In this document: positions 3,001 to 60,262 of the stretch, piece after piece
Numbering within the stretch: position 1 is the first letter of the stretch
Layout: each line of letters starts with the position of its first letter
Source of the DNA: Lepidodermella squamata
Taxonomy: Eukaryota > Animalia > Gastrotricha
Assembly: GCA_047495785.1 (NCBI GenBank)
Contig: JBLDXI010000074.1
Coordinates: 620,001 to 684,000 of the forward strand
DNA: 64,000 bases
Direction of reading: 5' to 3'
The notes under the pieces: generated by a model
Databases searched by the model: none
Told to the model about the DNA's origin: nothing
What the model saw: the letters and a program-made list of their open reading frames with translations, nothing else
Made by a program: the position numbers and the translations under genes

Positions 3001-4660
3001 ATACGACTGCTTCATCTGCTGAAGAACGCCGTGGAGTAAAATCGGAAATTGCCGGCGTTGAGATGCTGAAAACGACTGGGCGGAAATGCCATTCAGAAGA
3101 TACATAACAATGCGGCACCACTCATCGACAGATTTTATCCTGCTAACTGATGCGCTGAAATGGCTAGCCGGGGCGTTTTTCTTGTCACAGAGTAGCGCGA
3201 AACCTGCAGTCATCGCCTGCCAAATGTATTGAGAGCCGAAATTCGAAAATAACAAATCGCAATGCTTGAATCCAGCCGTTGCATCCGCGACAGATCGGCA
3301 GTACATAAAATGAATATAGGCTAAAATAACTCGGTCAGATAACTCTTCGCCAATCGGCCGTTTCTCAACAAAGGTGACTAAAATTCTGAAAAGTTGCGGG
3401 AAGGTCATAGAAGACGACTCGGAAGACATGTTAGAGTCAAGCAGGTTGAACACAGCGTTCATAAGTAGATCTTTCACTTCGTCAGAACACGTGTATTCGA
3501 CATCAGCGTTAGCAGCCATGTCGATAAGATTATGCGATGACCCTTTCAGTTTTGAATTCGAGGAGCTACTTTGAGCAGATGAGCTCGGTGTCATGAGCAT
3601 CCAAGCGAAAACACGGCGGCTCAAACTCATGTCTCGCTTAGATAGAGTCACTAGGGCCGCTGAAAGTAGTTTGAGCTTGTCGTCAGGTAACAACACAGCA
3701 GTTGCTGCGCTCTCACGATGCAGGGGCAAAGCCTGGCAGATAAAATCCAAAGCGTTGCGCTGAACCAACATATTTTCATCCGTCAGACAGCAGCATACAC
3801 CAGAAACCTACGATCAGTGAATTAAGCATGATATACCTTTCAATAATTCAGGAACTCATACCATGAAGCTGACATGCTTAACAGGAACGATACTTTCAAC
3901 TGGCACGATATTTTTCGGAATGACATGGATGTTTAGATATAGCAACGCATTAAGGCGCAGTTGCGATGACAAGCAAATGCTTTCCCAGAAGTTGACATAG
4001 AAACATTCTGGCGATACCGAAGCGCATATGTCATCCAATAAAACTGACGTGCTAAAAATTGATAAATCGTGAGCACAATATATCAATAACATAGAACGCT
4101 TACCGATCGAAAGATTCTGTACCCTCTTCAACGCCAGGAAGAAGCGCTAGGATGAACCCGGAGAGTGATTGGGCCAATTTGGGCCCCAAAGGTAAAAAAT
4201 GGGTTTCATATAATGATAAAAGCAGCGATTTGACGCTCATTGTTGCAAATCCCAATAAAGGATAGAGCCTGAAAAAGATAATACGGAACATAGATACACG
4301 TGAGATATATAAATCGAAACAAACTTACCCCAAAGAATAAATAAACAAGTCATTAGCCAATTTATCAGACCCAATAATTTCGAAGATCATCTTATAGGTC
4401 TCCAAGGCTTTCGCATGTACACCGGATGGAAGCGCCGGATGCAGACATTGTGCAAGTCTCTTCGCAACAAGTGCTTTTTTCGGCACGAATGCGAACTTTC
4501 CATAACTTTGGAAGACTTTGTTCAACTTTCCAAGCGCAGCTATAAGATCAGCCCATTCTGTTGAGCTTTCAAATGATTTCAAAGCTTTTTCCAATTGTAA
4601 CGCGTATGCCTTATGCTTCGGGTCAGTTATCGAAACATCCGGATCATCAGATGTGATCAT
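1..4660 (-). CDS. DOP1: Protein Dopey (DOP1), 5' part; multi-exon, continues beyond the left edge
   Basis: Dopey_N signature (LEKALKSFESSTEWADLI...KRLAQCLHPALPSGVHAKALETY), VQRNALDF, and an unlisted exon at 1528..1 encoding RFARFWHISR, VLDPLFLLLLHPDTAR and HPLASHLLVY. GT-AG boundaries preserve frame (e.g. intron 1529-2130). Confidence 0.93.
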
Positions 4661-32271: not shown

Positions 32272-35200
32272 TCACAAATCAGTTTCGCGGCTTGAAGCCA
32301 ACGGCGCCTTTGAATCGGCCTGAAATCGCTGCGTTTGCTCGGCAATAGTCGGCACGCGAGGTACAAAATTGGGCGGAGTCGAAAAGCTCGAACTTCTCGG
32401 ACCGCTCTGAACAAGATCCGGATCCCAGGAAACGTGCTCCTGAGCCGAAATTCGCCTAGTCTGAGCCGCCGCAGCGCCTTCCATCAGCCTTCTCGCCAAA
32501 ATTTGATGAGCCGGTTTGGCGATCGGTTTCTCCAGGCCTGGTTTAGGCAAGGCTCTCGGCGGTCTTTCTGAGCTTGAGCCCGTCGAATTCGATGAGCTAC
32601 CTCGTCTTGAACTTGGTTCAACCTCATCTTTATCCTTTTGAGCTTGCATTACAACCGCGGTTAAATCAACCGAATCCGACGTGGTTGAATGCTTCGACAC
32701 AGCGAAAGAGCCCACAGTTATCGGAATATCAGTGTAAAAACTCGGCTGGACGGATAATTGATGAATCAATTCAGCATTGCTCATGTCACCCTGGAATGTG
32801 GTTATGTGGTAGTTTTCCAGTGATTCCTGAAGTGACGTTTTTCTCGACGGTCCATGATCGGGTGACATGAACTTCGCAACCGCATCTTCGACCGTTGTAG
32901 CTAATCGGAAGGCATCACCAACGCCCATTTTTTCCATTTTAGCCGCTAGAGTCTCGCTCACATTTGCGAACATGACGTGTTTGTTGAGTTGAATAGCGGC
33001 TAGGAGAAGTCCACGAAAAGCTTGCAGGCCAGTGAAATCGATCCCAGTGACGAATTGGCAATCGATTAGGATGTATTTTTCTTTCACTTCTTCCAAAATT
33101 GTCGTTATTCGATCCGAAAATTTATCAGCACTTGGGTACCTGAACGAAGTTTTTCAAATTTCAAATTGAATTTCAAAATAGTTCAAAGATTCAAAAAATT
33201 CCCAGGTTTTCTATAAATATTTGGATTTGATTTTTTGAAAACTAACTTCATTCCATAAGGCAGGCGAACCACGGCCACTTGTCTTTTTTCTTCACTTCCT
33301 GGTAAGTGAATCGGCTTGACTTCGACAAGCATCCTCATTTTCACAATAGGTCTCAAAAAGGTTCTGCAAAATCGAATACATTTGATTGGGAAGTTTTAAA
33401 AATTCCCATGACTTACATCATGTTGACAAGTAGGCAAATGATGATCCCATAGGCTGGAAAATAACTCTAAAAATTATTGGCCTAGAACTATTGAAATCCT
33501 CACCGATGTCGTAAAATAGGCAGAGCAAGAAAGTGGCGACAAAAATGATGAAATCCTGTTTATGAGTCACCCATAGGTGCTTCAAAATAAGGAATTCGAT
33601 GAGGTTCAGAGCGGCGCATATGATGATCGCCGATAGAGCAGCTTTCGGCACGTATTGAACGATTTCTAAAAAATGTTTGTAAATATTAGACTTCGAAATG
33701 CCTACACTGTTCCGATTTGAATGAGATGATTGAAGAAAAAAATCTATTAATACTCTTGAAAATGCACAAAACTGCATACCTGTTCCCACTCCGATTACTA
33801 CCATAACAACAGTTGCGGTAATTATACTCGCCAACATTGTACGAACCCGGCAGAGGTCATTCAGCGCACTTCGAGTCACAGCGGCAGTTACCGGCACCCC
33901 TGAAATTATTTGAAAATTCAGCTCTAAAACTTGGCATCAATATTCAAATTAACCTGGCAAGAATCCTTGGAGAAAATTGGCCAGACCGATGCAGAGCAGT
34001 TCTTGAGAGGCATTAACGCGGTAACCGTTTTTCCGACCCAACGCTTTTTCAATGGCGAAAAGTTCCAAGCTGGTCATCAAGGTTATGATAACGATTCCTG
34101 GAGCCAACGCTTCAAGTAGACTGAAATACAAATTTTAGCAATGACTGAATTAACCTGAACTAAAATACTTGATATATTTTAGAGATCTAATGCCTTCGGA
34201 AAATAAATATAAATCGTAAAGATCTAAATTTTCCACGACTAAAATCTGCAAGGTTCCAATTTTCCAATTTTCCGATTTTCCGAGTTATATAGACTTCTTC
34301 CTGTGATTTGAAACTCATAATTCACAATTTCATGTATCCAATGTTGGAGCCTCAAATTCAACGCTGAACCCTACATTTCCACTTACATAAATCTGTATTT
34401 TTTTGAAAAATAAAAAATTAAATGCGTATTCCTCAAATCCCAAATTAATTAAAAATAGTTAACGAAATTCAAGAATAACTCGATTGCTGGTTTTAAAATT
34501 GCAGGTTCAGCTTTTGAATAGATGTAAGGTGCTCCATAAGGGCTCCTAAAAATAGTCGATCCCGATGAATTCGTCAAATACAGCTTTGGAATTTCCATAG
34601 GCGGAAAGCCAGCCGGTATAGCGCCAACCAGTGTGATTTTTATGTCCGGCGATGAGTCTTTGAGGAAATACGCCAGTGGAATGGCAACCGCGAATAGTAT
34701 CACATTCCGAGCGGCTGATACCATGAGGATGAACTCCATAAAAATCGAAATAGCAAGTTTCGAATTCTCCGTCATTTTCTTATCTTTCATCGACCTTTCG
34801 ACAACCAAATGTAGAACTTTCGGCAAAAACTATCAGAAGAAAATAATTAAACAATAAAAAAAATGTTTTTCTTACCTGCATAAAGAAGAGGAAAAGAATA
34901 GCGACACATCCTATTATTGCATCGTATTTCCTGGAAAATTTAAAATTTGCGAAAAATTCAGAAACAGCAAATTACAACTAACTTGATGTTATCTAAATTT
35001 TCGAAGACGAATTTTAGTTGGCGAACAATGACGCCGGGCGGTCTGTAATAGACACCTTTCAAGCCGACCAAAGTCTGAAATTCAAAAGATAATTTTTCGA
35101 ATATTATTTTCAGCAATTTGTACCGCCAATTGACTTGCTGCAATAGCGAATCCCGAGGCAGAGGTGAATCCTGATACAACAGGGACGGAAAATAGCGAGA

Positions 35201-37643: not shown

Positions 37644-40600
37644 TCACAAGTCAGTTTCACGGCTTGAAGCCAACGGAGCCCTGGGCCCCGGTGAGTCGGT
37701 TTTAAACCTTTGAACTTGTTCAGAAATCGTCGGCACACTAGGCACGTAAGACGTGGCTGAGGGCGCCGAAAAGCTCGAACTCCTCTGGCCAGGCAAAATG
37801 GCGCCTAATAAAGGGTCAACATTAATAACAGGAGCCTGCTCAGAAACCCGTCTGGCTGGGTACTGGCCCGAAGTTCCAATCAACTTCTTCGCAACCGATT
37901 GATGCGATGGCAGCGGAATTTTCGACGATAATAGCGACGAATTTGTTGAGATTAAAGAAGATTTTCGGTCGCTTGAAGATTTGCTACTCCGGCGAGATTC
38001 AGCCGTGTTTTCCTTCTCGGCCTGAGCTTGCATAACAACTGAGGTTAGGTCGACATTTTCCGGCTTTGTAAATTGCTTCGAAACGCCCATCGAGCCAACT
38101 GATAGCGGGATGTCAGCGTAAAAACTCGGTTGAACCGATAATTGATGAATTAATTCGGCGTTTGTTTTGTCACCCTGGAATGCGGTGATCGGGTAATTTT
38201 CTTCCGAACCATCCGGGCTTGGCTTTTTCGACGTATTCCCGCCGGCTTCGGGCGATATGTACTTAGCAACCGCGTCTTCAACTGTTGCAGCGAGGCGAAA
38301 CACATCTCCAACGCCCATTTTAGCCATTTTAGCGGCTAGAGTCTCGCTAACATTCGCGAACATGACGTGTTTGTTGAGTTGGATTGCGGCTAGGAGGAGG
38401 CCACGAAAAGCTTGCAGGCCGGTAAAATCGATTCCAGTGACGAATTGGCAATCGATAAGAATGTATTTTTCCTTCACTTCCTCCAATATGGCCATTATCC
38501 GATCCAGAAATTTATCGGCACTTGGGTATCTGCAAAATGAATTTTGAAATTTTTTAAAACTCCATTTTCCTATTTAAATTTGGAATAATTTTTGCTCGCT
38601 GAAATTTCATTTTCATACGATCTTCAATCGATGAGAATTCAATAAAATTCACCAACAAATTTTACGACATAAAAAATGACAAGAATTTCTAAAAATCATT
38701 ACTTCATTCCATATGGAAGTCGAACCATCGCTACTTGCGCCTCAGTGGATCCTCCAGGAAGATTAATCGTTTTCGCTTCGACCAACATTCGCATTTTAAC
38801 AACAGGCCGAAGAAAGGTTCTGAGAATAGTCAAAATTATGGAAAAATTCAGAAGAAAACAAAACTCTTACAGCATGTTAACGAGAAGGCAAATGATAATT
38901 CCATAGGCTGAAAGAAAAAGATGTTCACCAAAAACATAATAGATGGTGTCAAATTCATACCAATGTCGTAGAATAGACAGATAAGGAAAGTAGCGATGAA
39001 AATCGCGAAATCTTGCCGATGGGTCGTCCAAAGGTGTTTCAATATTACAAATTCGATGAGATTCAAGGCCGCGCATATAATAATGGCTGATAAGGCAGCT
39101 TTTGGCACGTATTGTACAATTTCTGCGTCAAAAGAGCAATACATTTTAAGATATTAAAAAATATCAAAATGAAAAATTATGCGAGAATTTCAAAATTTCG
39201 AAAATTAACCTGTGGCTGCTCCGATAACTATCATCACAACAGTGGCTGTAATTAGACTGGCTAACATGGTTCGAACTCGGCATAAATCATTCAAGGCGCT
39301 TCGAGTAACCGCAGCCGTTACAGGGACACCTAAAATTTGAATGAATTGATAAATGCTATTTTTTTACAATTCTACCCTACCTGGCAGAAAGCCCTGGAGA
39401 AAATTTGCGATTCCAATGCAGAGCAGTTCTTGCGATGGTTTGATCCGATAGCCATTTTTACGTCCGAGAGCTTTCTCGATGGCAAAGAGTTCCAAACTGG
39501 CCATTAGGGTTATAATAACAAAACCAGGGGCCAACTCTTCCAATAACCTAAAAAATAGAAATAAAACAATATTTATAAAATATTTTCAATTTTTGGAGTA
39601 TATAAATTTTCTTAGTAATGGAATGAAAAAATAAATAAAAAATTGAATACTATTCTGAAAAATGCTGACTTACTCAATTGCTGGTTTCAAAACAGCTGGC
39701 TCCGTATCGCGGTAGAAGTACTTATCGCCAAACGGACTCAATCGATAGGCAGAACCACTCGCATTCGTCAGGTACAATTTAGGCAGCTTCATCGGCGGAA
39801 ATCCGGGTGGTATTTGCCCGACTAGGGTGATTTTAATTTCGGGCGATGTCATTCTGAGGTAGTAAGACATTGGAATCGCAACGCCGAAGAGCATCACGTT
39901 CCTCGCTGCCGAAGCCATGTGGAGAAATTCCGTTAATATTGTAATTGATAACTTCGTTTTTTCGGACAGTTTTTTCTCTTTCGTATTTTTATCAATCACC
40001 CATATCAAAACTTTCGGCATAAACTGAAAATAAAAATGATAGGAAAATGATGAAATTTTAGAGAAACAATTCACCTGCATGAAAAATAGAAATGCGATCG
40101 CTGAGCAGCCAATCAAAGCATCGTATTTACTAAAAAATTTCAAAAATGTTACAAATTAAAATTTTGAAAAATTGAAAAATTACTTCATATTATCAAAATT
40201 TTCGAAGAAAAACCTCAGCTGTCGAACAAAAACGCCAGGCGGTCGATAATATTTCCCTTTCAAGCCGACCAGAGTCTTCAGAAATTCAGAATTCGAAGGT
40301 CAGATCAACAACAAATTTCGAAAAAAATTAATCAATTTTTTGTACCGCAATTTGACTTGCTGCAATGGCAAATCCCGAAGCTGAAGTAAACCCGGCCACA
40401 ACAGGTACTGAAAATAAAGAGACCAAAAAGCCAAGCCGTAAAACGCCCATGATAATGAGTAGAACTCCAGTGAAAAGAGCTAAAATAGTCGAACACGTCG
40501 GATCGCCGGCTTCAACTAGATAATTAGGCATAACTGATGCGGTCAATTGGCCGCTGAGCATCGATAATAAGGCTGATGGTCCTATAGAAGCGTCTACAAA

Positions 40601-44933: not shown

Positions 44934-47900
44934 TTAGACGTAACTTTGCCAGCCACTGTACGCCAAAGCCAATAACGATCGATTAGCAGCCATTTGGATA
45001 AGCTCAGCAACCAGATTTTCAGGCATTGTCACCTGATTCAGAGCTAAATTGTTTGTTTTAATTTCCGAGCTCGATCCATCATCCTCATTGGATAACGCAG
45101 TATCCACCGGCAATGTTGCAAAAGCCGTGCTGGGCATAAAACTCTGCAGAGTTTGCGGCTCCATTTTCACGTCAGAAGGTCCAATATTCCCGAAACTATC
45201 ACCAGATTGACTAGATACTGGTCTTTCAGCACCATTTTCTGAACTTTTACCCACCATGCAGGCTAGCAAAAATCGCTGCCAGATCGCATTTCCAGATAAT
45301 TTAACCTGGGCTCCATTCATTTCGACAGGAATCGAAACCACCGATAATTTGTTATTACATGCCAATAAATGATTGAAAATCGAAATCGGAGACGAACGAA
45401 GTCGTGAATTTATTCCGATTTCAACCGAATTTTCACGCCTATTTTGACGTTGATGGAGAGAAATCGCCGCATCTAAACTGCTGCTACCCGTTGAAACGAA
45501 GTTTTTGACCACTCGAGTCATTTGTCTAGCGAAACGACCCTGTTCGCATGGCCAAATCAGAGTTCTGAGACTGGAAGTTAGTCGGAATGGGACCAGCTCA
45601 GGTACGGCTAGCTGGCTAGTCGCTGATCCGTAGGCATAACCGAAGTCAACTCCGACGAAAATGGGCGATTTCGAAGCTCGAGGCGGGACAATTAAAACAT
45701 TTTTAAGGTGGCGATCGCCGATTCCAAGTAAATAGTGGCAAATCGAGGACACAGCGTAGGAATCGACTAGCTGAAGCCTGTTCTTATGCGACTCATTAGC
45801 ATCAGCTGAAAAGTTCAAAAGCGACTTCCTCAAGCAATCTACATCGATTTGCTCACGTGTAACTTGCATTGTCGCTAATTGATCAGGACTAGCTAGCGCA
45901 GCTAAATTCGTATAATCCGACAAATTCAAGGGTTGATTTTGGCCAGACTTCGAATTTCCAGTCAATTTATACAGTAGCTCGACCGCTAAACGATCGGCCC
46001 GACCTCGAAACTTTAATTTTTGGGATTCAGTCATAGAACTCGGGTAGACGAAATCGCTAATTGGCTGAGATCCATCGATCCACTCCAAAATTCCCAATTC
46101 ATGCGTCAAAGGGCAGACTGAAAACGAGGACATGGCAAGTAAACAGCCCAATTGATGGCAATTTTGGTCGACTGATTTAGTCAATAAAGCCGCCATGGTT
46201 CGCAACATCAGCTCAATATGCTGGTCTTGACCCAAGTTATCGCCGCTTTTGCATAACAACCGAGCCAATTTTCCGTTGCTCAACCTCAATTCGATGCGAA
46301 CTGGCCTTCGCAGTGATTGGAGGACTACAGCTTCATTCGAAAAACCAACGACAGTGACGTCACAAGGCAACCACGGCAAATTGAACGAATCGTTTGTGAA
46401 TTTCGAAAACCAATCAAGCGAATCCAACTTGAAATTACCGGGTGTAAAAGTCGAATTAGATAACGAGGATAAGCCATTTTCAATAAAATCACAGGTCGAT
46501 TTAGCTCCATTATTTTTCAAATCAGACCAAAGTTCACGAGCAAAAATCGATTCGGGGTTAGAATGATTGAAATTATGAATGGAATATGCCGCTTGATTTG
46601 GAAATATTTCGCAATATTTGCGTATTGCGAGCGACAAAACCTCCGAAAAATGCGAATTTTCGGACGCAGAAGCCAGCGACAGCATTAAAGGCAACCATGG
46701 ACCGACTATATCAGGCTGTTTTCGGGTCGATTCGACAAAATTTACAAAAGCTGAGCAGAAATTGTCGAAAGAATCGGGCGATTCGAGCTTATTCAAGGCA
46801 TCGAAAAGTGGAGGCAAATATAGGCAGGTGTTGTCAAGGCCTAATTTCCGAACCTGGTTAGTCAAAGCCCTCAAATACAGCAAAATCACTCTTTCAAACT
46901 CAATTTCGTTGAAATCGTGTTTCACAGCGAAATTAAGGAGTAAACTAGCCGAATTTAGCTCGGACTCACCTTCACTGGTCAGAAGGCAATTTTCCAGGAA
47001 ATCGAACGAATTTTCCGAATTAGTCACGGCTGAAATGGAATTCAAAGCCTTCTCGCGATCATTTTCGTCGCTTATCAATTCAGCGCATTCGAAGCATCGG
47101 GCTATCAACCGGAAATAATCACTTTTCAACGAACTTCTGGCTTGATCGAGGGCTATACGTCTCTTCGCGAGTTCTCCAGCAACTTTCGGCAATAATTCGG
47201 CTAATTTTGACGGGGTTGCTAACAATGATTCGACTCGAAGAGGGGCCAAATGAGTTTCAGCGTAAGCCAAGGTAAATTTCAGCCCAGACAATGGGTCCTG
47301 TTTGAAAGTTCGACCGAATTTCCGATAGCAATTTTCTAGACTCGAAAGAGCGGAGCTAAAAGCATTCTGACTGGTCAACGCTCGAATTCGTGTAATTTTC
47401 ACTTGAAATAAATCTTCGTTCAAATCGGATGAAAATGCCTCTTGAAAACAATCAAGCAAATTCCATGAGGTTAGGTCAGCATTTTGACTCAATTTCAAAA
47501 CTTTCCGCTGCGAGTTGATGAAACAAATTAACTTCATTTGATCGATAGTCGAATTATTCGATGTTAAATCGCTACCGAGCAGCAAATATTTTGATGCACT
47601 TGATAGCAACGACGAAGCTCGATTTTTAAGATGAATCAACTGGTAACAAGCCGCGAGTGGAATCGCGCATTTCGCGACATCAACACCGCCGCTTTGTTTG
47701 AACAACGTGAACAATTCGTCGAGATTTTTCGATGAAGCTTCGTCCTCTGATTCGACGCCTTCGAGAAGAACTAAGCATTTTGCGAGGACTAGTTGGGAAA
47801 TTGCCTCGCTTCGAAGGCTTGATGACGTCGAGAGCTGAAACTGTTGACCTGCCGTTGCGCTGGTCGAGTTCATAGTCTGCGCTTGATGATACGAATAGGA

Positions 47901-50900
47901 ATTGGCCAATTCTTCGGCGACCGTAGCCAACTGCTTCCAACTACCAAGGCGGGCCTAAAAAATAACAAAATATTTTTCCAATTTCATGTCATCAAATTTG
48001 GAAAAATTTGAAATAAAATTGAATTAATTTTGAATTAATTTGAATTCAATTTTTTAACTGTTGAAATATTGGACTAGTGTGAGGATTGATTGAAATGTCG
48101 TGTCAACGGAGATGTGGCCCTTTCCTTGCCCCGGCGAAGATTTAGAGCTAGTTCGCGCCTTTTTTCCGAAATCGCGCAAATCCCGAGCTCAGCAACCCGT
48201 TTACTTTGAATTCCGATCAGCAAAATATTGATACTGCGGCGTGTTCGGATATGGAGGTCACTGTTAATGCTACCTCGGAGTAACTCGGTCGAGCTTAAAA
48301 TCGCCGAGGTGCTCGGATTCGTTCTTTCATCAACAGGTTTCAAGCAATGCCTGGTCCGAGATTTCGACTTCGTTCAGAATGTCAACGTTTTCACCAAATT
48401 CACCAAGGTTCACCAAATGTCTGAGTCTGACTACGTAGGTCTAAACATTTCGAAAACAACGAAGTCGGTTCTTTCCGATCCATTATCTCGGCACCTGCTT
48501 CGAACCTACTCACTGCGGTCTTTCTCATCGCGACTTGACAGTTACCATGTTATTCTCATAGATTGGCAGCGATATTTCAGAGCCGTTCAATGCGACAGCT
48601 GGCGTGAAGAAAGGTGATCCTCTGTCACCTTAGCTATTCTGCATTTTTATTGACAATTTGGAAGACGACCAGAACATCACGACTGAAATCAATAAGTACC
48701 GAGGGCATGAGTCAGCCCTAAAATTTTTGTTCCATGAAGGTCCCCGAGCTCTAATCTTAAAAATGGCAGCAAGCAATTGCTGTCCCCTAAACTTGTCGCG
48801 GGTCTTGCTAAAAAATTTCAACATGGCTTATAATTTCATTTCTTGTTTGAATAGGTTGCCTTTACGGCTGCTGCGCCCGGCGCCTATCACTTGATACCGC
48901 AATATCGCGATCGCCGGGGAAAGCGACGTAGAACTTGGACGACTCATGAACAGTACTGCCGACCCCCGTCGACAACCTAACGCCCATTATCGTGCGTTTT
49001 CCAACTCGCACGAAGCTGCCCGAAGCTGCCGATGGCCCGGCGTACCACACGCGGGGGGCGGCTAGACGCCTCTAACGAATTGAGAATTGAGAATTGAGAA
49101 TTGATATCTTCTAATTGTTCTCCCGTAGCGAAGAAGCTACTGCCTAAACACCTGACGAGGTGGAGACCTCAGGCGCGAATGGCAAACGGAGCCATCATCA
49201 TTGAACTAATCGAGGACGCTCGAAGATCAAAGGAGAGAATCCTGACCGAGACCAAGTACTGGAAAGCGGATCTGAGAGCAAGTCCCGTCAAGACTGGGCG
49301 CATGCGAGATGTGGCAGACATCCTCGCGGAAGAGAAGAGAACGCTTGAAGTACAGGGCCTTCTTCTGAAGAAGCTAAATAAAACTATTTTAAAACCACAT
49401 TGCGAATCAATTGTTGAGAGTATTAAGTCCTCTCACGACAGGCGGTTAACGTCGCGACTGTCTCTTGCGAGACGTTCCTTCACACAGATACTCCGGCAAA
49501 TTTCTAGAGGCTGCCTTTCAACACCATTTCAAGGGCGGAAGGTTGAACTTTCATTCGAAATCAGATGAAAAGCGTCTTTTTTAGAAAACTTTTCACAATG
49601 AAACCGCCTCGTTGAAGAGCAAATATTTTCAGTTGGTTTCTTCTATTCAAGTTTCGAAGCCTATTGAGGTCATTTCCGCTTGTCATATTAAATCACCGCA
49701 TTTTACAGAGCGTTTAAGGACCAACCCATGATAGCGCATCTTAGCGCGAAAATTAATGCGATATTCGAAATCTACGCATCATGTTAGCTTATAATTTGAA
49801 GTTATTTGAAGTTATTTGAAGTTTATTTAAGTTTATTTAAGTTTATTTATTTATATATTTATTGAAGTTTCAAGCTAGCCGATATTTTTCCAAGTTTCCA
49901 GACGAAGTTTCGGTATTACTTCATACATACCCTGTACTGTTCCCTATATTAATATTATCTCACTAATAAACTAATAATAGGTCAAGTACTGTAAAAATAC
50001 GTCAACTTTTTGCAACTAACCTTATTTTCGATTTGTGTCCAATGCCCAAGAACAATCGGCCCCTTATCGGCCATGTTAAACCAGGCACAAAATGGGGTGT
50101 GCCTTTAGGCGAAACCGATAAATAACTCGACATAAATATAGCCAATTATGACAAGAAAGACAATAATGAAAAGTTTCCGAGCTCTTCAGTCAGCGAATTT
50201 TGAAACGCGGAAACCTGCCAATATTACGCTGAAGGCACAAAACGTTCCGGCCCTGCCCACGCAATCAGGGTTCAGTTGAGGTTCAGTGCCCTCGATCTGC
50301 CTACATGCATTACTCGCTTGCTCTGTCGATAATACTACACAAATAACGAAATCAACTCACCAGGCAGGACATTTGGCCAGATAGCAGCAGTTCACTCTGC
50401 CATGCGCTGCCTAGGTCTTCTTGATCAGAGAATAGCGTTGAGGCTGCGGCTGAAAACGGCGAGTCTGATCGACCAGCCGGGGCTAGGCCACTGGCAGCTG
50501 ATTCGTAAGACGCGCAGGCTAACAGCCACGAATTCGCCGCTTCTTCTTGCAGCGCTTTCAGTAGTATTTCAGAAGAGTCGGAGTGAAGTGACCACGATTC
50601 GATTACAAACTTGGCCAGACCTAAAGACAGGTAAAATTATGTATTACAGATCACAGATAAAACTGAACTAATTACTATCCCGTTACCAAATATTCACGAA
50701 GTATAGTGTCTACTATACAAGCACTATACAGCGACAAGCAAATTTTCGGGTTTCAACCAGATCGAAAATTCAAGACAGGTCACGAAAAATCGGAACAGAC
50801 TCCAGCGATTAGCAAAATAATATAACTCCCCGTCTCTGAAGAGGGCTTACTACAAATCCCGCGACCAAGTGACAAAAGAGACGAATCGGTGGGTATGCAA

Positions 50901-53900
50901 AAAGCAAATAAGCGCGCATGGTCACTTCGGAACGGCCCCGCAAATGTTTTGGAGAACTATGAACTCGGCCATGAAGAAAAATGCGTCTACAGCTACTTAC
51001 GTTATGAAAGACTTGCTTATCGACAGGCGCTCATAACCTCTGATGCAGGGAAAGTTGAGGCGATGGGGATATTCCTCGAAAATACGTTCTCTGAATGCAA
51101 GGATTTACAATTAACCGCAGAAGACCGGCTATAAACCGCCAAAACCGCCGCCACCTTACCTTGCTTCGAAATTGGAATCATGGATGTAGAAGCGAAAAGT
51201 ATTTTAAATACAGAAATGATAAGAAGCCGCATTCGCGATCTCAAAATGAAAGCTCCGGGCCACGACAACATTCATAACACTCTGCTAAAAAGCATCCGAC
51301 AAGATGATTCAAATTTTGCTCTTTTTATATACAAGCATTTCGATATTCGGCTTTGTACCGTCAGCGTGAAAAGTAGCTGTGATTATTTTATTACCCAAGC
51401 CAGGCAAAGATCACCAATCACCGAAAGGCCACAGACCCATATCTCTCCTGCCAGCTATAGGCAAACTATTCGACAAAATCATGAACCGAATTTGCCTATA
51501 TGCAGGTTACGTTCTGACGCAATCGAAACCCTCTGAGGAATATGAAACTGCCTTTGAGTTCTAAAGCAAATGGTTGGTTCCATTGATAGGTTGCACGCAA
51601 TCACGAACTATTTTGAACCTGATGTGCTCCTTGTATTGAGGTGTTTGTTCCCGGGCGTGGAAATAAAAGGATGCCTGTTTCATTACTGCAAGTGCCTTCT
51701 GATATGAATTAAAGAAAATGGAAGAAATGGCGAAGAAATGATGGGGCTGAGATCGGGCCTAAAACGATCAACTTCCTTGATACTGCCGTGTATATTGATA
51801 ATGGCTGTCTTTCGTGCAAATCTCATCGTAAACCTATGGCGTCAAAACATATTCTGCTGGCCAATCCGTTCCACCCCAGTGTGGTAAAACGCAACGCTTT
51901 GTACAGATAGCTAACCGCATGGTCAAGTACACGCACTCATCGCTAGCCAAGGACAGCGGCTACGATGTTGACCTCATCGAAAGAGCCATTCACTGGTACT
52001 TTCACTAAAACAGCCCAAGCCAAAAAAGCTAAACATAGCCAGGCTGTCACTGCCATATATTGGAGATAATGTAGCCAACAGGCTGAAAGATTCAGTAAAA
52101 AAGCTAACGGCATTCTTTCAACGGGACATCCAGATTTGTTGGAAATCAACCACCTTGAAGTTAACAGTCACGACACGGTTCGCTGATTACAAACATACCA
52201 ACTACAAATGTTGGGGCTGTCTATGTGGCCTGACTAGAAAGTTTCTAGTCTGATGATGGCTCGCGAGAAGGCTGAAACGTCACTCTAAACGTTCTTTGCC
52301 GATACATTTTCTCTTCAAACTATACCCTACACGGGTGTTTATATCTAGTCAACAACCAATATAGCAATAATAGAAATGTTATCCTATGCTAAATTAATCA
52401 ATTCACAACTCTCAGCGTTATTATACTTTTATCGATAACAATAAAATGGCAAACATACCGTAAGCAGAATCGAAATCGCCACAAGCTCGATACAGCCGAA
52501 TGAGACACCCAAGTCGCGAGGACTCAACCGCTTCGGAGTAATCCACGCGCCGCTTTTTCGCCCCTGAACCTTCATCGCAGTCGAGATGTTCGTCTTTCAC
52601 GCCGAATTTATTAACAAAATCAGGCAGTTGAGATGCCTTGGTGGGGCATAGAGTCGACTCGAGTAGTGCGATAGCCCCCTTGGTGTGTTGCCCGCTTGCT
52701 ATTCCAGCACTCGTTATCAAATGGCGATCGACAACAGGAATTGAAACTAGAAAAACATTTAATCGAAAAGCTCAAATTATCAATATTTATATGCCCAATC
52801 AAATAAATGGTTCGGCTATTACCGATCCAGTTGGTCGAATTTTTCCGGATTTTTTCATTTTTATTAATTCACTCTCTATTTCAATTTTCAATTTTTTCCA
52901 GCCTTGAAGATTATTTCTAGTCGCGTTATTTTGCGCGATTTCGTAGAGATGAAAAGTTGAAAAGGGCATTTCAAGTGAAAAAAAACATTTGGAATTGTGA
53001 AAATACCAGAAAATAATTAGAGTCAAGAACTTACAGGAATGCATTGTGGAGAAAATGAAACCGACCAAAGCTTGCGATTTTCGTCTGTCTTTGACTTGCC
53101 TCAGCAGTGTATCAAAACTCTCCGATAGACAAGTTTTCAACGCCAAAGCAATTGCTTCGCTGTTTTTCACTTCCATTTGAATCAAATTTGCAAGAAATCT
53201 CCCGGCTACGGCTCCACTTTGCTTAAGCATAGCTCTTAAATTCGAGTTCAATTCCGATTGATTCGATTCAATGCCGGTTAAGATCGAACTTTTACGCCAT
53301 CTCTTCATCGTCTGCGTTTGAGCAGCTGCAGAACTGACTTGTTCAAAGTGCCTCAGCGTCAATTTTTGAACTAAATCTCTTCGATCGAATCTCTCGAAAT
53401 TTTGCGAATTGCTCATCAAAGCGTCGAAACATGAAACAGCCAATGAGGATAACACCCAAAATGGGTATCTCGACAGCTCGTTTTGGCAAACAACGAAGTC
53501 GAGAAACGAAAGCAATCGGACAATTGGTTTCGAAAATTTCGGCGAGACAATTGCGCACTTGTCTTCCGCTAATTCAGACCAAAATGCGAGATTTTCGTCG
53601 AAAGTAGCCTCGTTCGAATCCCCGAATGCCTTGAAAGCCATTTGAAATAGCGAGTTTTTCGAATTTTCAGTTAAATTATTGATTTGAATCGCGATTTGCC
53701 GCAAAACCTGATAGGCCAAAACACGAATTTCCCACGCATTCGAAGAAATCGCAATCTTCAACGCATAATCCGAATTCAGGAGCAAATTTTGACAATCGTC
53801 ACTCAAATTTGAGTTCTTAATTGCGAGAAGACACGCTGATAGTAAATGACCCCAAACTGGAAGCAAAGAACCGTCTTTAGACAAAATACTCGGCGGGGCG

Positions 53901-56900
53901 AGTTTCCGCATAATTTCACAAGCCCTGGGAATTACTTCAGTCGACATTGCTCCAACTGAAGCGGCGAATTCCAAGACACAAGATTGAGCTTGGGTAGAAG
54001 TGAAAGCTGCCAGTGACAAAGCTGATGGCAAATATTCATTAGACAGCAATTCAGCAAAGCCAGGTAATTTATTTCGGTCCTCAGATGTCGTAAAATCTGC
54101 CACAAATAGCACCAATTCAGCCCAAAAATCGGCTTTGCTCGTCAACCAGGAATTCAACCCATCTTTCAACGCATTTTTCGCTTCAAATTCGTCGAACTCC
54201 AATCGATTTTGCGGTAGAAGACCCCTCATAAATATGTGATAAGGCAGTGAGAGAGCCGCAAAACCAAATATTGGCCTCTCATTTTGAGCCAATAAATTCA
54301 TCCGAAGGCCGTATGGCGATAAAAGAGGTAAAATCAACCCGAAATTTTCAGATTTCAACGAATAACCAGCATCTAACATCGCGATTATGACTCTCAAAGC
54401 AATGAAACAGTCTTGAGGTGTGGAAAATGTTGAAATCATGCCAATCATTTCTCGAGGGATCGGTCGTCCTGCTTCAGGGATCCACTTTTTCAAACCTTCC
54501 ATCAAAATATCGACAGTCTGAAGGCAAAATTGACGAATTTTTGAAACATTCGAATTTTCAAGTTGACTCGACAAAGTTTGAGCGATTTTCGTCGTTGTTG
54601 AAGCAATAACTTGATCAATTAAAAACCAATCGATTGAGATACCAGAATTCAAGTCGAAATTTCGGACCAGAACTTCGAGCAAATCATTAACGAAATAATT
54701 CAACGGAAATTGTGAGCAGATCAATTTTTGGCTATTAATCAAAACTTTAGCCAAGGTTTCAAACATCAGCGATTCGAAGCCGATTTGAAATTCAACTGAA
54801 TCGATAAGGAGCCGGAGTAAAAATTGAGCGACATTAATCCCGTCGAAACCACTTGTTGAATTCGCAATTTTATTCACAATTTCCGACAGCCATTTTTGGC
54901 TATTTTGCGATTTCGGAACCAATTTTACAGCTCTCAAAAATGAGGAATAGACCCCGTGGTTACGAATCGGGTCAGATTCTTCCGGCTCCAAACCGTAATT
55001 TCCAATCGTAACGCCTCCAAACAATATTTGCCAGAAATGTTCGGGCTTCTCAGTCAATAGAATCGGCTCGATCGCTGCTGGTCGTTTCGAGCAAACGATA
55101 GCCGAAACCAAAGCGAAAACTCTTTGCTGCAGATATCGATATAGCTCGAAAATAGGATCACCCGGAACATTTGTAACCGAACTGCACTTGCATTTTGATC
55201 GAAAATCGTAACATAATGCTGCCAGACCTTTGTGGCAATGATCGGGAATTTTATCGACGATTTTCTCAGAATCGATGACTGAAATCAAAACAGCCATAGA
55301 CATAAGGCTTTTGTTCACCAGATCGCAACGATGCGTGAAATCAGTCGCATCGATTGTGCCAACCAAGTTCGATATTGATTGATTCAATTCAACCCCGAAT
55401 TCGTCCAAATATTTCAACAAGGCCGGGATTAATTCCGGAAAATCGCTCAATAATTTTGAAATTAAAAACGAAGCCTGATCATACGTTGACTGCCATAATT
55501 TCGTCGATGAGCTGACTGGTTTCGATTGAGCAATTTTATTCAGCGTTTCTTTCAAGCAAAAAGTCTGGAGATCGAGGCTCGGCAGCCTTTTCAGAAATTT
55601 CAACGATTTTTCAAGGAACGGCTCAGAAATTATCTGGCAATTTTGAACCAGTAACAACGTTACATCCTGAAGAAACCAGTTCGAATAACATTTTTCCATT
55701 GAAGTCAAAATTTGACACATAGCGAGGCAAAACGCAATTTGTTCCGAATTTCCAACAGCCGAAGTGGTTAATCTCAGATTATTTTTGTCCAAAAATAGGC
55801 CAAGCGCTACTCGCAACGGACCTGTATCCATGGAGGCAAGTTTTGAACTGAATAGTGGTAAAGTCTTCAAAAAAGTCATCGCGGTCGTCTCTCGAATGTA
55901 AGTTGAATTCGTTGAAACTTCGCGTAGAAAAGTCGAGATGAAAAATGTGATTTTCGCCAAATCTCCAAAATTCAGATTATCAGGTGTTATTTGAAAATTC
56001 GCTTTTGAAATCGACGATAACAGAGTCAAAAACAACTCTTTATCGGTTATTCGACTGCTTAACTCTGCAAGTAAACTCAGCCAGGTTGGAGGTAGCTTTT
56101 CTTCGCTTGAATCGGCAAAAGAATCGAAAAGCTTGATGAGAAATTGAACGACTCTGCATGGGCTGAATTTCGAATTTTCAACGTTTTTCCGAAGAAATTC
56201 GCACAAATCAGAGCAACGATTTACCAAGAGAATTCGAGAAACAGATCGTAATGCAACGAGCGGTTCAGCTTGCAAGAAGATCTCATCCACAGCCGTGCCA
56301 AAATCTTCGACGGTCAAGTTTTCCAGAATCATTTCAAGTACAACCGATTCCTTTGAATACGGAAAATGGACATCGCTCAATCCGATGACTGATTTGCTAG
56401 ATTCCCAGTCTACTTTTCTGCAATTATTAGAGAATTTGTGGCTGATCAACAGGTTGAGACCATCGGAATTCAAGTCGAAAAACGAATCTCGGAGATACTC
56501 AGCAACATTCTCACATCGCTTAGATAGTTTACTCAAGGCAATGCATAGCTCATATTTTAAATAGGACGGGATATTCAAATCGATTTTGAAAACGTCGGCA
56601 CCAATTTTAGCGATTTTGAGAGCTATTTCAGAATCTGTTTCTTTCAAATTACACATCAGCAAACAGAAGTTTGACACACACTTCGGGTATAATTCAGGTG
56701 GATCGAAGGCCAACATTTCGATTTGAGAGAAGATTTCGGCGAGTTTAAACGATGACGGGTCGACATTTGACCGGGATGAAATTTCCAGCCATTCAACGTA
56801 AGCTAATAAAACCTCAGGACCATTTGAAAATTCTGACTCATCCGGAGAAATCGGAAGTTGCAAGCTCGAACTCACGGCCAAATGCATTTTCCGAGAAATT

Positions 56901-59900
56901 CTCGACATTTTACGAGGATTCAACATGCAAGCCTTGATCGAGCTGAAAAATTCGGGCGAATTCGCCGCGTTATCACATTTAATATTTCGAGCTATATTAG
57001 AAACAGCTGAAAGTCGAATTTTCCCATGAATAGAAAATGGGTCGTCATCGAGTTTTTCCATTGAATTCATCGTATCCAAAACAAACTTAGAATCAGGTAT
57101 TTTTGAGCTTGAACGAAAACTTTCGCCCAAAATCCAAAGCGCCTTAGTAAAAATGGCTTGATCGTCGGAATTCGCAACTGTTCGAAGCAAATAATCACTG
57201 ACCGGTGAATTTTCGCATTTATTAGCGATTTCGAGTAAAAACGGGTCCGAGATCGGGCAGCTTTTTAATAGCGACCTTAGACATGCTTGAATGACTTCGC
57301 CAAGGTCATTTTCATCATTTGAAGCCAATAAGGCAAACAAAATTTCCGATTGAAATTCGGTCAACTCAGAATTTGGGTTCAACTCAAGGTACTTGAAGAG
57401 CTCTTTCAGCTCTGGTTTTCGACAAAAATTCTTCAAATTTGGCAAAAGAGCCTTTTGCAGGAATCTGATTTGATTAACAAAGCTGCCAGCAACTTCTAAT
57501 CGAAGCCCTGAAGTTTCAGGGATCGCATTAAATAAATCCTGCAACACTTTGTTAAACTTTTCTTCGTTTACTAACCCAACTTCTTTAGCCTCGAAACTTG
57601 AGCTTGATGAAAATTGAGCCGTCAATTCGACTAATTTCGCCTCTCCGTTGCTGTTTGAGAATAGTAAAGACACCAAAGACCGATTTTCAAGAAGTTGTCG
57701 AACAAAACCACTCGCAATGTCTTTTTCAAACGGCATCGCTTCATCGGGAGATGTGTTTTCATTAAATTCGTCCATCCAATTTGTTAGAGATTCCATAATT
57801 TCGAATAAAATGTCGACTTTTGAATAATTTTCAATTTTGAATGAGCCAACAATTCCGAGAATTTCTCGAATATTTCGTGAAATTATGCCAAAATCGTCTT
57901 TTCGCTGAGCCAGCCTGGGATAAGGAATCCACAGGAAACATTGCAAAATCGATAGCAAGGACTCAGAATTCTCAATAAAATGCCAGTTATTCAAGCGATA
58001 TAAAACATGGCTGATGAGATCGCCGAGCAATGCATCATTACTCGGATCCAACTTGAAAATCACAGATAGCATCGTGTATAAACTCGAAATCGATCTAATT
58101 TGCAAGAATCTTTCCGATAACAGCAAATATTGAATAGGAATCAGAATTAACGGACTTCGAAAATCTTGAAAGTCCCGAATTAAGGGTGCAACCTCTTGAC
58201 ATATCTTGGCAATGTTCGGCAAATTCGTCGAATCCAAGTCTTGAATAGAGTCATCATCGCAAAAATTTACAATCAATCGATAAGACTCTCTGAGACCAAT
58301 TGATAGAATTCGCCTATTGAAATCAACCGATTGATATTCTTTCACAATTTGGCCGAAACTGGGCGATAACTTCGGGAAATTTGAAACGAGTTTCGTGAGC
58401 AAATAGTCAGCTTCACATGTCATTTTTTGCGAATCTAGCATCGTTAAGGTGGATTTTAACATTTTCGCGAATCTCACCGCATCTTCGGTGCCTTTTACGA
58501 AAGATATCAACCCAACCTCGCGCAGAAATAACTCTGAAAACGTGTTGAACATCAAGGAATCGAGAACTTTCGGCACATTGCTTATTAATGTGATCAACGT
58601 TGATAACCGAGATAGTGCTTGATGACTCGGATCATCGTCTTCGAACTCTGAAATTTCTTCAGTAGACGCCAAGGAAATTTTCAATAATTTTGACATTAGA
58701 GAGTTGATCAGCTCAACATGAGTGACCCGACCTTGAGAACCGTCCATAGACAAGCTGCTCGATTCTTCGGATGATAACCAAGCCGGGGCTAGGTATGAGT
58801 AGCATAGGAAAGCCTGGGAATGGTGGTGAGATCTCGCTCGTTTGTCCGATAAAATCGCGGCTAGACACGACAGATGACGATTTAAAACCTGTTTATTCGA
58901 ATCAGAGCTAAGCAGCTTTCCAGCGTTCAGGCAAAGCGCTTCAATTAAACGACCACTTGCGGAATTCAAATCGCGAGATTTGGCCCAGATTCCGTTCGAA
59001 GCGCAGTCCAAAATCACGGGAGCAATCTGGTCCGAGACTAAATTGTTCGCGAATAATTTAGAACCGAATTCGGCCAGAAAATCGAAAAGTGGCACCAGAA
59101 CTGCTGACACTGAGTTTAGTTGACGATAGTTTGGCCTCTTCAGCTTCATTTTCTGCTTTTGGCCACGAAATATCCGCCTTTGAGCTAGATATTTTTGCTG
59201 ACTCTCAGCTGTCATAAATACGTTAGTCTTCTTCGACTTTTTCAGAATTTCGACTAGTTGATTGAGCAAATCGTGCTGTGAGAGATTGCTTTTGAAAAAG
59301 TCGACAAAATTGGGCGATTGGCGGAAATAAGTCAAAATCGCCCTGATCGAAGCAGCGCAAATCAGCCACTCCGTTTTCTCCCCACGAACTTGCTGCTTCA
59401 ACATGGCGACGAAATAACGAAAGTATTGCTGTGGTCCACTGTCGGTCAAATCGTTGAGTAAAGAAGCATCCACCATCGTTTCGATGAGGTCAATCAAAGC
59501 AATATTAACCGAGTTCTTTAATACTTTCGTTTGTCCAATAGTTGACGTGAGCATTTTCTGAATTCCAACTGAATCGATACGATTTTTCCAGGAATACAAT
59601 TTTGATTCTAATTGACTGGCTTGCTCATCCGGGTTCGCGTTTTCATCGTTCTGGTCGTTGGTGAAATCGTCAGTAGACGCGATCTTCAATCGATTAATCA
59701 TTTCTGTTATGGCATTTAATGCAGAGGCCTGAACAGAATTGCAATCACTAGCTCGAAAAACTCGTAAGCCTAGGACCTGGAAAACTATAATTTAAAACTC
59801 AGGTCAAATCAAGTTCCCAATCTTGATACCTTAACTTCGGTAATATATCGCGACGATAAATCGGCTATTTCGACTTGTTTAACGAAATAGTACAACGATT

Positions 59901-60262
59901 TTGCAAAATTCAGTTGGGTCTCTTTCGACATGACAGAAACTGATGCAACCAAAGACTGAAGCTGGCAGAATTTATCCGACAAATCGAAATTGTTGGACTC
60001 ACTTCTACCTCCTTGAGATAAAGAGCCTGTAAATTTGTATTGGCAAATGACATAAAAAATATGCAAAGAAGGATAGTCTGCACTCACTTTGATTGCTGCT
60101 TTCATCGGTAAACAAGCTGTCATTTTCACCAGAAGTCACACTGGATTGTGGGAGCTCGGTGACGATGTTTTGCGTGCTCTTCTCGTAAACATACGGAGCT
60201 TCCAAAGCTCTACGCAATATTTCGCATTGAGCATCAACTTCGTCCAGTTTTACGCCGCTCAT
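44934..60262 (-). CDS. PRKDC: DNA-dependent protein kinase catalytic subunit, divergent, ~3560 aa; exons 60262-60088, 60026-59830, 59776-53035, 52746-52459, 50620-50361, 47954-44934
   Basis: PIKK motifs of DNA-PK type: SLRRPVRI, LLCKSGDNLGQDQ, LGIGDRHLKN, DFGYAYGSATSQLAVPELVPFRLT, FATC end YSGWQSYV, and LYRACGDFD. Exon phases are all compatible (10683 nt, a multiple of 3). Confidence 0.88.
48090..48700 (+). mobile_element. Degenerate non-LTR retrotransposon RT fragment in a PRKDC intron
   Basis: From 48601 translates GVKKGDPLSP*LFCIFIDNL, a decayed GVxQGDPLSPLLF RT motif. Confidence 0.65.
49081..49104. repeat. (TGAGAAT)x3 short tandem repeat
   Basis: tgagaattgagaattgagaattga. Confidence 0.7.
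49794..49870. repeat. AT-rich ~10-bp minisatellite (ATTTGAAGTT / ATTTAAGTTT)
   Basis: Read directly. Confidence 0.75.
50860..51490 (+). mobile_element. Frameshifted LINE (Jockey/I-like) ORF2 remnant
   Basis: KAPGHDNIHN..LK and IILLPKPGKDHQSPKGHRPISLLPAIGKLFDKI, the pre-RT/RT-start motifs. Confidence 0.85.
51491..52160 (+). mobile_element. Degenerate MULE (Mutator) transposase remnant
   Basis: YVLTQSKPSEEYETAF, LFPGVEIKGCLFHYCK (FP..GCxFH motif), GHPDLLEI; stops and frameshifts. Confidence 0.7.
52247..52284 (+). ncRNA. Minimal type I hammerhead ribozyme motif (Penelope-like), probably degenerate
   Basis: AGT-CTGATGA-TGGCTC(GCGA)GAAGGCT-GAAAC-GTC-ACT. Confidence 0.55.

Follow-up and report, generated by a model that had tools for sequence, protein, structure and literature searches.

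Can a DNA-PKcs work in non-homologous end joining (NHEJ) without the ABCDE cluster, whose autophosphorylation is regarded as a conserved and essential switch of DNA-PK, with T2609, T2638 and T2647 reported as conserved across most eukaryotes? The question is raised by a gene on the minus strand of a 64,000-nt stretch of the genome of the gastrotrich Lepidodermella squamata (GenBank assembly GCA_047495785.1, contig JBLDXI010000074.1, positions 620,001 to 684,000; hereafter the window, in whose coordinates all features are given). A preliminary description of the window, made from its letters, had proposed that around 53180-53370 a DNA-PKcs has lost the ABCDE cluster and the adjacent DNA-end-blocking (DEB) region from an otherwise intact enzyme. 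By profile, alignment and copy-number evidence, we conclude that the gene is a single-copy, fast-evolving DNA-PKcs ortholog, that its ABCDE loop is gone, having shrunk to about 2 residues, and that the block after the loop is of the usual length with the signature residues of its YRPD motif replaced. The reading that we favor, with a probability of roughly 60%, is that the gene encodes a working Ku-dependent kinase that would operate without the ABCDE switch.

Translation of the minus strand at 53180-53371 gives VQKLTLRHFEQVSSAAAQTQTMKRWRKSSILTGIESNQSELNSNLRAMLKQSGAVAGRFLANLI, identical to the peptide quoted in the preliminary description, and this peptide lies, as had been stated, within a single exon, in an open frame of 2,300 codons (52799-59701). 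A Logan contig of the probable source run, at ~100x depth, matched 52400-54400 with 0 differences and 0 gaps; because this independent contig matches exactly, the sequence at 53180-53371 is not an assembly accident. Based on splice signals and reading phases, we predicted a DNA-PKcs-type gene of five exons on the minus strand, comprising 10,452 nt and 3,484 codons, in which exons 3, 4 and 5 are referred to below as exons A, B and C:

60088..60262, minus strand: predicted exon 1, with the ATG at 60262 (MSGVKLDEV...) and donor A/GTGAGT, from splice signals and frame
59830..60026, minus strand: predicted exon 2, with acceptor TTTACAG/ and donor AAG/GTATCA in agreeing phases
53035..59776, minus strand: exon 3 (exon A), 6,742 nt, N-HEAT and M-HEAT, with donor T/GTAAGT at 53034
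52427..52746, minus strand: predicted exon 4 (exon B), start of the FAT region, ITSAGIASGQHTKGAIALLES...LIRLYRACGDFDSAYGMF, at positions 2675-2745 of the DNA-PKcs profile hidden Markov model (HMM), from splice phases
47955..52426, minus strand: intron 4, 4.5 kb, with non-long-terminal-repeat (non-LTR) reverse-transcriptase debris on the plus strand at ~51.2-51.6 kb, seen in open-reading-frame translations
44937..47954, minus strand: predicted exon 5 (exon C), FAT, kinase and FATC, with the stop TAA at 44934-44936, from Pfam, PDB and profile matches

The introns other than intron 4 span ~60-290 nt. Within intron 4, pieces of a non-LTR retrotransposon reverse transcriptase (ILLPKPGKDHQSPKGHRPISLLPAIGKLFDKIMNRI) were noted on the plus strand (e.g. 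51379-51564, within 48000-52400). Exon-A residues are numbered below from the Met at 59701; full-length numbers are higher by approximately 149. All searches and folds of the protein were run exon by exon.

For the identity of the gene, the C-terminal exon was the most informative. Exon C matched the Pfam families PI3_PI4_kinase (1.1e-25) and FATC (3.7e-4; 20.6 bits, under the 25.3 cut-off), and its kinase, compared with PDB by phmmer, matched human DNA-PKcs (5e-33) ahead of ATR (7e-14), ATM (1e-12), SMG1 (2e-9) and mTOR (2e-7). Exon C scored 241 bits against the DNA-PKcs profile, and the best full-length matches among 1.84 billion representative proteins were named DNA-PKcs (Nilaparvata, Antedon, Naegleria, Lymnaea and Branchiostoma). 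In a maximum-likelihood tree of kinase domains, in which long branches make the exact position of the pair unsafe, the protein and a metagenomic relative paired at 100/99 on the DNA-PKcs side, apart from the mTOR, SMG1, ATM and ATR-like loci of the same genome. For the HEAT exon, homology to DNA-PKcs was detectable with profiles only, which we built from 57 full-length DNA-PKcs representatives. Comparison of exon A with these orthologs by hhalign gave three collinear matches with probabilities of 92.9%, 81% and 37%, the last of them for a middle block; the two stronger ones were as follows:

58775..59770, minus strand: N-HEAT homology block (hhalign probability 81%, P 1.2e-5, collinear)
53573..54979, minus strand: NUC194/CC3-to-'FW' block of M-HEAT (hhalign 92.9%, P 3.8e-7, 418 columns)

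Within the second block, the core of the NUC194/CC3 region matched the DNA-PKcs HMM at 13.6 bits (E 7e-7), which is below the threshold of Pfam PF08163. The last 600 aa of exon A and exon B, each compared with PDB by phmmer, retrieved nothing even at E 10, and a word-index protein search with exon-A residues 1500-2223 returned no homolog. Foldseek with a 664-residue AlphaFold2 (AF2) model found generic ARM/HEAT solenoids, with DNA-PK at rank 15 (TMq 0.33). The kinase, the profile, hhalign and the large protein search thus agree with the DNA-PKcs identity given in the preliminary description.

The copy number was assessed across the 121-Mb genome. The three best other PIKK loci proved to be mTOR (8e-146), SMG1 (9e-143) and ATM (8e-122), and the remaining PI3K/PI4K-kinase loci, which had lower DNA-PKcs-profile scores, were left unnamed. 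There was no second DNA-PKcs candidate among the PIKK loci checked and no match to NUC194 across the whole genome.

The loss of the loop is most readily seen in the distance between two conserved anchors, both found by hhalign and MAFFT. On the left, ...AFWSE corresponds to the ortholog consensus ...FWSxExRLP, and on the right, LRAMLKQSGAVAGRFLANL corresponds to PLQALAxxDxxIAxxLFxxL. When the two halves were aligned separately, each fell at its expected collinear place on the 885-column template (P 4.2e-4 and 0.011). From the FW anchor to the LRAML/LQALA anchor there are 115 aa here versus 137-426 (median 238) in the 57 full-length orthologs, and ~280 aa in echinoderm, amphioxus and mollusc sequences, so that the interval is ~165 aa shorter than in deuterostome-type sequences, close to the roughly 170 missing residues first estimated. 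The loop itself, measured from the end of the pre-loop helix (SKSPDY; SNSQNF here) to [F/Y]ARK (FDRR here), is ~2 aa long, compared with 42-323 (median 139) in the 57 orthologs. Relative to the human protein, the missing piece corresponds to about residues 2577-2735, which take in the TQ sites and the basic patch as well as the conserved segments PLSECxF and SWRxR. The features around the junction are:

53396..53566, minus strand: final pair of HEAT helices ahead of the loop position (exon-A residues 2046-2102, with ...CFDALMSNSQNF at its end), from its position and length relative to the FW anchor, with two helices in a low-confidence AF2 model and the residues aligned by eye
53390..53395, minus strand: junction E2103-R2104, the site of the loop in orthologs, with a left boundary that is good to within a few residues

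This boundary was set by length logic and a by-eye alignment, because the ungapped profile of the pre-loop helix pair did not fall at the expected place. A shallow two-sequence AF2 model was all-helical at the junction with no room for a disordered loop; its pLDDT of 49 restricted its use to secondary-structure tendency.

Along with the loop, the S/T-Q cluster has disappeared, as the preliminary description had said. Orthologs carry a median of 4 S/T-Q in the ABCDE loop (57 representatives), and here a single TQ remains in the 53180-53371 stretch, at 53312-53317. Exon A as a whole holds 16 S/T-Q versus 13.9 expected, and no S/T-Q cluster beyond chance was found elsewhere in the three main exons 3-5. 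The densest run in exon A, four SQ in 66 aa (residues 1598-1663), was considered as a relocated cluster and rejected, as 9% of shuffles produce it and the AF2 model shows this region as confidently folded.

What follows the junction was examined with ungapped position-specific profiles made from the orthologs and scanned across all of exon A. A 70-residue block, from -36 to +33 of the YRPD Tyr, fitted best at R2136, ranking 1 of 2,154 (z 4.3). Three sub-windows independently reached the same register within one residue: the DEB-helix sub-profile ranked 1 of 2,194 (z 4.1, one residue off), the YRPD sub-profile 8 of 2,207, and the following-helix sub-profile 2 of 2,201. MAFFT and hhalign chose this register as well, setting TMKRWRKSSILTGIES against TMYRQYRKGDLPDIQI, with IES equated to IQI by hhalign; hmmalign against a sub-HMM gave no more than a local, uninformative alignment of the fragment. 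In this register FDRR falls at -31, against about -32 for [F/Y]ARK in the orthologs. YARK is the motif changed in the published YARK>AAAA DEB mutant (PMC10760257). The block comprises three segments:

53306..53389, minus strand: DEB-helix-like segment FDRRDLVQKLTLRHFEQVSSAAAQTQTM of 28 residues, with FDRR at [F/Y]ARK and the only TQ, from profile, MAFFT and an AF2 helix
53264..53305, minus strand: degenerate YRPD position KRWRKSSILTGIES, reading R, S, T and G for the Y, G, P and D of YRxGxxPD and K for its R
53177..53239, minus strand: helix LRAMLKQSGAVAGRFLANLIQ after YRPD, matching the right-anchor consensus by hhalign and profile

Because 53180-53370 can be fitted without a gap to the DEB helix, the YRPD position and the helix after it, we regard the DEB and YRPD region as degenerate rather than deleted, and place the deletion upstream of it, at ~53390-53395. 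The preliminary description had listed the DEB region among the deleted parts, and in this respect it needs correcting. Its claim that YRPD is lost holds for the motif, since no YRxGxxPD-like sequence occurs in exons 3-5 even with relaxed patterns, and fails for the position, which is still present with its residues replaced; KRWRKSSILTGIES retains the flanking R, L and I. No equivalent of ABCDE or YRPD was found elsewhere in these exons. The helix that it had chosen as right-hand anchor is the one recovered here by hhalign and by profile.

Among the 57 ortholog representatives the strict YRPD motif is present in 46 and absent in 11, while Lees-Miller et al. report (YR)xYRxGxxPD in each of their 33 metazoans (PMC8021618). 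Besides Cimex, ten of the 57 fail the strict pattern, including P0002, P0019, P0050, P0055, P0075, P0085, P0120, P0125 and P0137. Nilaparvata and Anopheles christyi are among the failures, several of which retain partial forms such as GDLPD, and erosion of YRPD is seemingly wider in arthropods than loss of the loop.

These registers also bear on the account with which the analysis began, in which a canonical DNA-PKcs carries one clean deletion of ~170 aa that starts after the conserved WRxxSxxLT and removes ABCDE, the DEB helix and YRPD together. It gets the missing length right (115 vs ~280 aa in deuterostome-type orthologs) and its right-hand anchor is correct, and WRKSSILT, which had been equated with the human WRFRSTVLT, has W, R, S, L and T in common with the consensus of the orthologs, SWRSRSSSMTPLF. 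However, setting W2135 on the Trp of SWRSRSSSMTPLF ranked only 378 of 2,209 positions (z 1.0), a chance-level score, whereas the 70-residue ungapped register is the top-ranked one and the one on which MAFFT and hhalign agree. Nor is the rest of the protein canonical, with an exon A that has no Pfam or phmmer match, an undetectable forehead, and a FAT region that is ~230 aa shorter as judged from spacing alone. We consider a discrete deletion in an otherwise canonical enzyme very improbable.

The best match of the large protein search was P0001, encoded on a 13-kb metagenome scaffold (ENA ERZ23486764; locus L019), which matched exon A at 23% identity (E 6e-22) and exon C at 26% (E 4e-58). Its linker from the pre-loop helix to the ...VVASRFL helix is ~50 aa long, ~15 aa shorter than that of our protein, and contains neither S/T-Q nor YRPD. 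A scan of metagenome contigs with an alignment of the two proteins found no further relatives, and P0001 is the only relative of the clade that was found. The motif after the catalytic Lys in P0001 has also diverged from the conserved form. Since the loop-less architecture occurs with an open frame in two very divergent lineages, it is old, which argues against a pseudogene, and the persistence of open frames at ~25% identity indicates long-term purifying selection on the frame.

The short architecture could in principle be an artefact of assembly collapse, of a pseudogene, or of a loop spliced in from elsewhere, and there was no RNA run against which to check the splicing. We find this explanation exceedingly improbable, as an independent contig at ~100x reproduces 52400-54400 exactly, the junction falls within continuous codons of the 2,300-codon frame so that no exon can be inserted, the metagenomic relative shares the short architecture, and exons 3-5 contain no YRPD-like motif or significant S/T-Q cluster that could stand in for the missing part.

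The catalytic motifs (LLCKSG with its Lys, GDRHLKN, VDFG, and GWQSYV with the FATC Trp) are all present:

46221-46259, minus strand: catalytic Lys (LLCKSG) in LLCKSGDNLGQDQ, from alignment
45501..46376, minus strand: kinase domain, from alignments to human DNA-PKcs and the profile
45699-45719, minus strand: DRHLKN, from alignment
45612-45650, minus strand: DFG and activation loop VDFGYAYGSATSQ, in which the T3950-equivalent Thr is kept and followed by SQ
44937..45035, minus strand: FATC, ending ...AYSGWQSYV with the conserved Trp, from Pfam and profile

A search for partners in the same genome, which had been suggested as a check, was largely successful. Ku70 is present with its SAP domain, and so are an Artemis ortholog (1.3e-23, vs 9e-11 for Apollo) and DNA ligase 4 (LIG4; 4.7e-49). 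Ku80 (C20:1.7236-1.7247 Mb; L003, L004) has a Ku_PK_bind domain (1.1e-11) and a frame ending in ...SDERDLLADL. The Ku_PK_bind domain and the acidic tail of Ku80 are tied to recruitment of DNA-PKcs, and we take the acidic D-L-L tail found here to resemble the motif that serves this purpose in vertebrates. XRCC4 and XLF, the other two partners named, were not found by Pfam.

Retention of these partners has to be set against the fast evolution of the gene. The mTOR (L007, C29:2.279 Mb), SMG1 (L009, C32:3.513 Mb) and ATM (L010, C15:4.528 Mb) loci of the genome score 411-489 bits to their human counterparts, and the DNA-PKcs kinase exon (44937-47954) scores 117 bits; because the three are well conserved in the same genome, the acceleration is specific to the DNA-PKcs gene and not genome-wide. 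Such gene-specific divergence would be expected if relaxed constraint or a new function had taken a DNA-PKcs-derived PIKK out of canonical NHEJ, as has been proposed for the Lepidopteran sequences, with the loss of the loop as one symptom of a general decay of DNA-PK-specific features. The undetected forehead and degenerate YRPD fit this account, as do the DLS that replaces DFG in the metagenomic relative and the published Lepidoptera with the same losses (PMC8021618). Decay is harder to reconcile with a frame of ~3,484 codons that is intact, with large frames that persist in the relative at ~25% identity, with catalytic motifs that are intact in this protein, and with a genome that retains Artemis, LIG4 and a Ku80 with Ku_PK_bind and an acidic D-L-L tail. 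We judge departure from NHEJ to be unlikely, albeit an alternative to be taken seriously.

Several observations weigh against a working Ku-dependent kinase, and we list them together. At the level of sequence similarity, the 2,223-aa exon A matches no Pfam family, and phmmer against PDB found nothing for it, human DNA-PKcs included, even at E 10. The forehead domain (human 893-1200), which is reported to be better conserved than any other DNA-PKcs-specific region, was undetected rather than proven absent: nothing aligned between template columns 448 and 1693 by hhalign and there was no Pfam hit. Together with the divergence of the HEAT region, this may mean that the protein no longer does canonical DNA-PK work. 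In the kinase, our own reading of the PDB alignment against the published list of invariant residues is that G3935, listed as invariant in 85 species (PMC8021618), is not obviously kept, and that F3946 is Tyr. The relative has DLS in place of DFG (L019:10300-10500; P0001 residues ~880-900), so its kinase is possibly impaired and P0001 may be a pseudokinase or weakly active, and no DEB or YRPD block was detectable in L019 by profile. In our protein, the DEB profile is partly compositional, as it describes a charged helix, and the corresponding AF2 helix (residues 2105-2127, pLDDT 56-77) is surrounded by low confidence. No Pfam match to XRCC4, XLF or the LIG4 linker motif was found in the genome, a weak negative that says little because the control genomes equally gave nothing. 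The run search returned only the probable source DNA run and no RNA run holding the stretch, so that expression and splicing are predicted and the function of the protein is entirely inferred.

If the protein is nevertheless a Ku-recruited kinase at DNA ends, as we favor, ABCDE phosphorylation would be unavailable for the switch from end protection to processing and release. In the human enzyme, phosphorylation of the ABCDE sites displaces the neighboring DEB helix and opens up the DNA cradle to Artemis (PMC10760257). Three outcomes could be envisaged here: the DEB-like helix may no longer block the ends, giving constitutive access; blocking may be relieved in another way, through the activation-loop Thr/SQ, ATM or the binding of a partner; or the protein may have drifted from canonical NHEJ. 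The retained activation-loop Thr followed by SQ would be one candidate for alternative control. A fuller version of the favored reading, in which a naturally loop-less, working DNA-PK with a degenerate YRPD hinge partners Ku80, Artemis and LIG4 and has its end protection and processing governed by some other mechanism, is possible though doubtful.

If true, this would provide a natural test of the autophosphorylation model of NHEJ. Lineages that keep the Ku80 tail, Artemis and LIG4 and yet have a loop-less DNA-PKcs are natural examples of the loss of the switch. At ~3,484 aa, the protein would also be a compact natural counterpart to the ABCDE>Ala and DEB mutants in biochemical and cryo-EM studies. 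Its value is limited because the protein is highly diverged, its function is inferred, and similar losses are known in Lepidoptera and Cimex.

Elsewhere in the window, two adjoining gene tails of the sulfate-permease/STAS (SLC26-like) type lie on the minus strand at 32272-33897 and 37644-39144, an apparent tandem duplication. Also on the minus strand, a 556-aa frame at 2101-3771 opens on the last part of a Dopey N-terminal domain (PF04118, 3.7e-12) and represents a large Dopey-family exon.

Turning to known systems, a literature search on DNA repair in gastrotrichs returned nothing relevant. Human and vertebrate DNA-PKcs (PRKDC; PDB 5LUQ, 7K0Y, 7NFC) share with this protein the catalytic Lys, DRHxxN, DFG, the FATC Trp, the collinear N-HEAT and NUC194-to-FW blocks, and the helix after YRPD. 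The human protein has 4,128 aa versus ~3,484 aa here, where the ABCDE loop and the S/T-Q cluster are missing, the YRxGxxPD residues are replaced and the forehead is not detectable. The closest published parallel is in Lepidoptera, whose DNA-PKcs-like PIKKs lack the forehead, the autophosphorylation loop and YRPD and have weak kinase conservation with the essential catalytic residues kept; their orthology to DNA-PKcs was left open (Lees-Miller et al. 2021, PMC8021618). Compared with that published description, the gastrotrich protein shows these losses too, a likeness that does not imply common descent; Lepidoptera belong to another phylum, and the loss is presumably independent. The two also differ: NUC194 is conserved in Lepidoptera but below the Pfam threshold here, where the kinase is clearly nearer to DNA-PKcs than to TOR and a degenerate DEB/YRPD-position block can still be located statistically.

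Within our own set of 57, the only other collapsed loop was that of the bed bug Cimex lectularius (cluster of P0023; XP_014249436.2 and isoforms), which is 42 aa long and contains no S/T-Q. Unlike the gastrotrich protein, that of Cimex keeps a YRYYHGDYP motif; it shows no specific HEAT similarity to our protein, and some members of its cluster are named with a CC3 (NUC194) domain. The preliminary description had stated that a deletion common among invertebrate orthologs would count against it, and this objection holds in part. Loss of the loop is rare (1/57 representatives) but has precedent, published for Lepidoptera and observed here for Cimex.

A last comparison is with engineered human enzymes. 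For the ABCDE>Ala and the DEB YARK>AAAA mutants, altered end release and processing are predicted (PMC10760257; PMC8021618), and ABCDE>Ala mutants remain on DNA ends and are very radiosensitive (PMC8021618). Those mutants carry point changes in a loop of full length, whereas this protein has lost the disordered loop altogether and its DEB-like helix runs nearly straight into the HEAT scaffold. As far as the alignments place it, the gastrotrich case adds to these systems a new lineage and a particular architecture, in which the ABCDE loop has been lost while the positions of the DEB helix and YRPD are retained.

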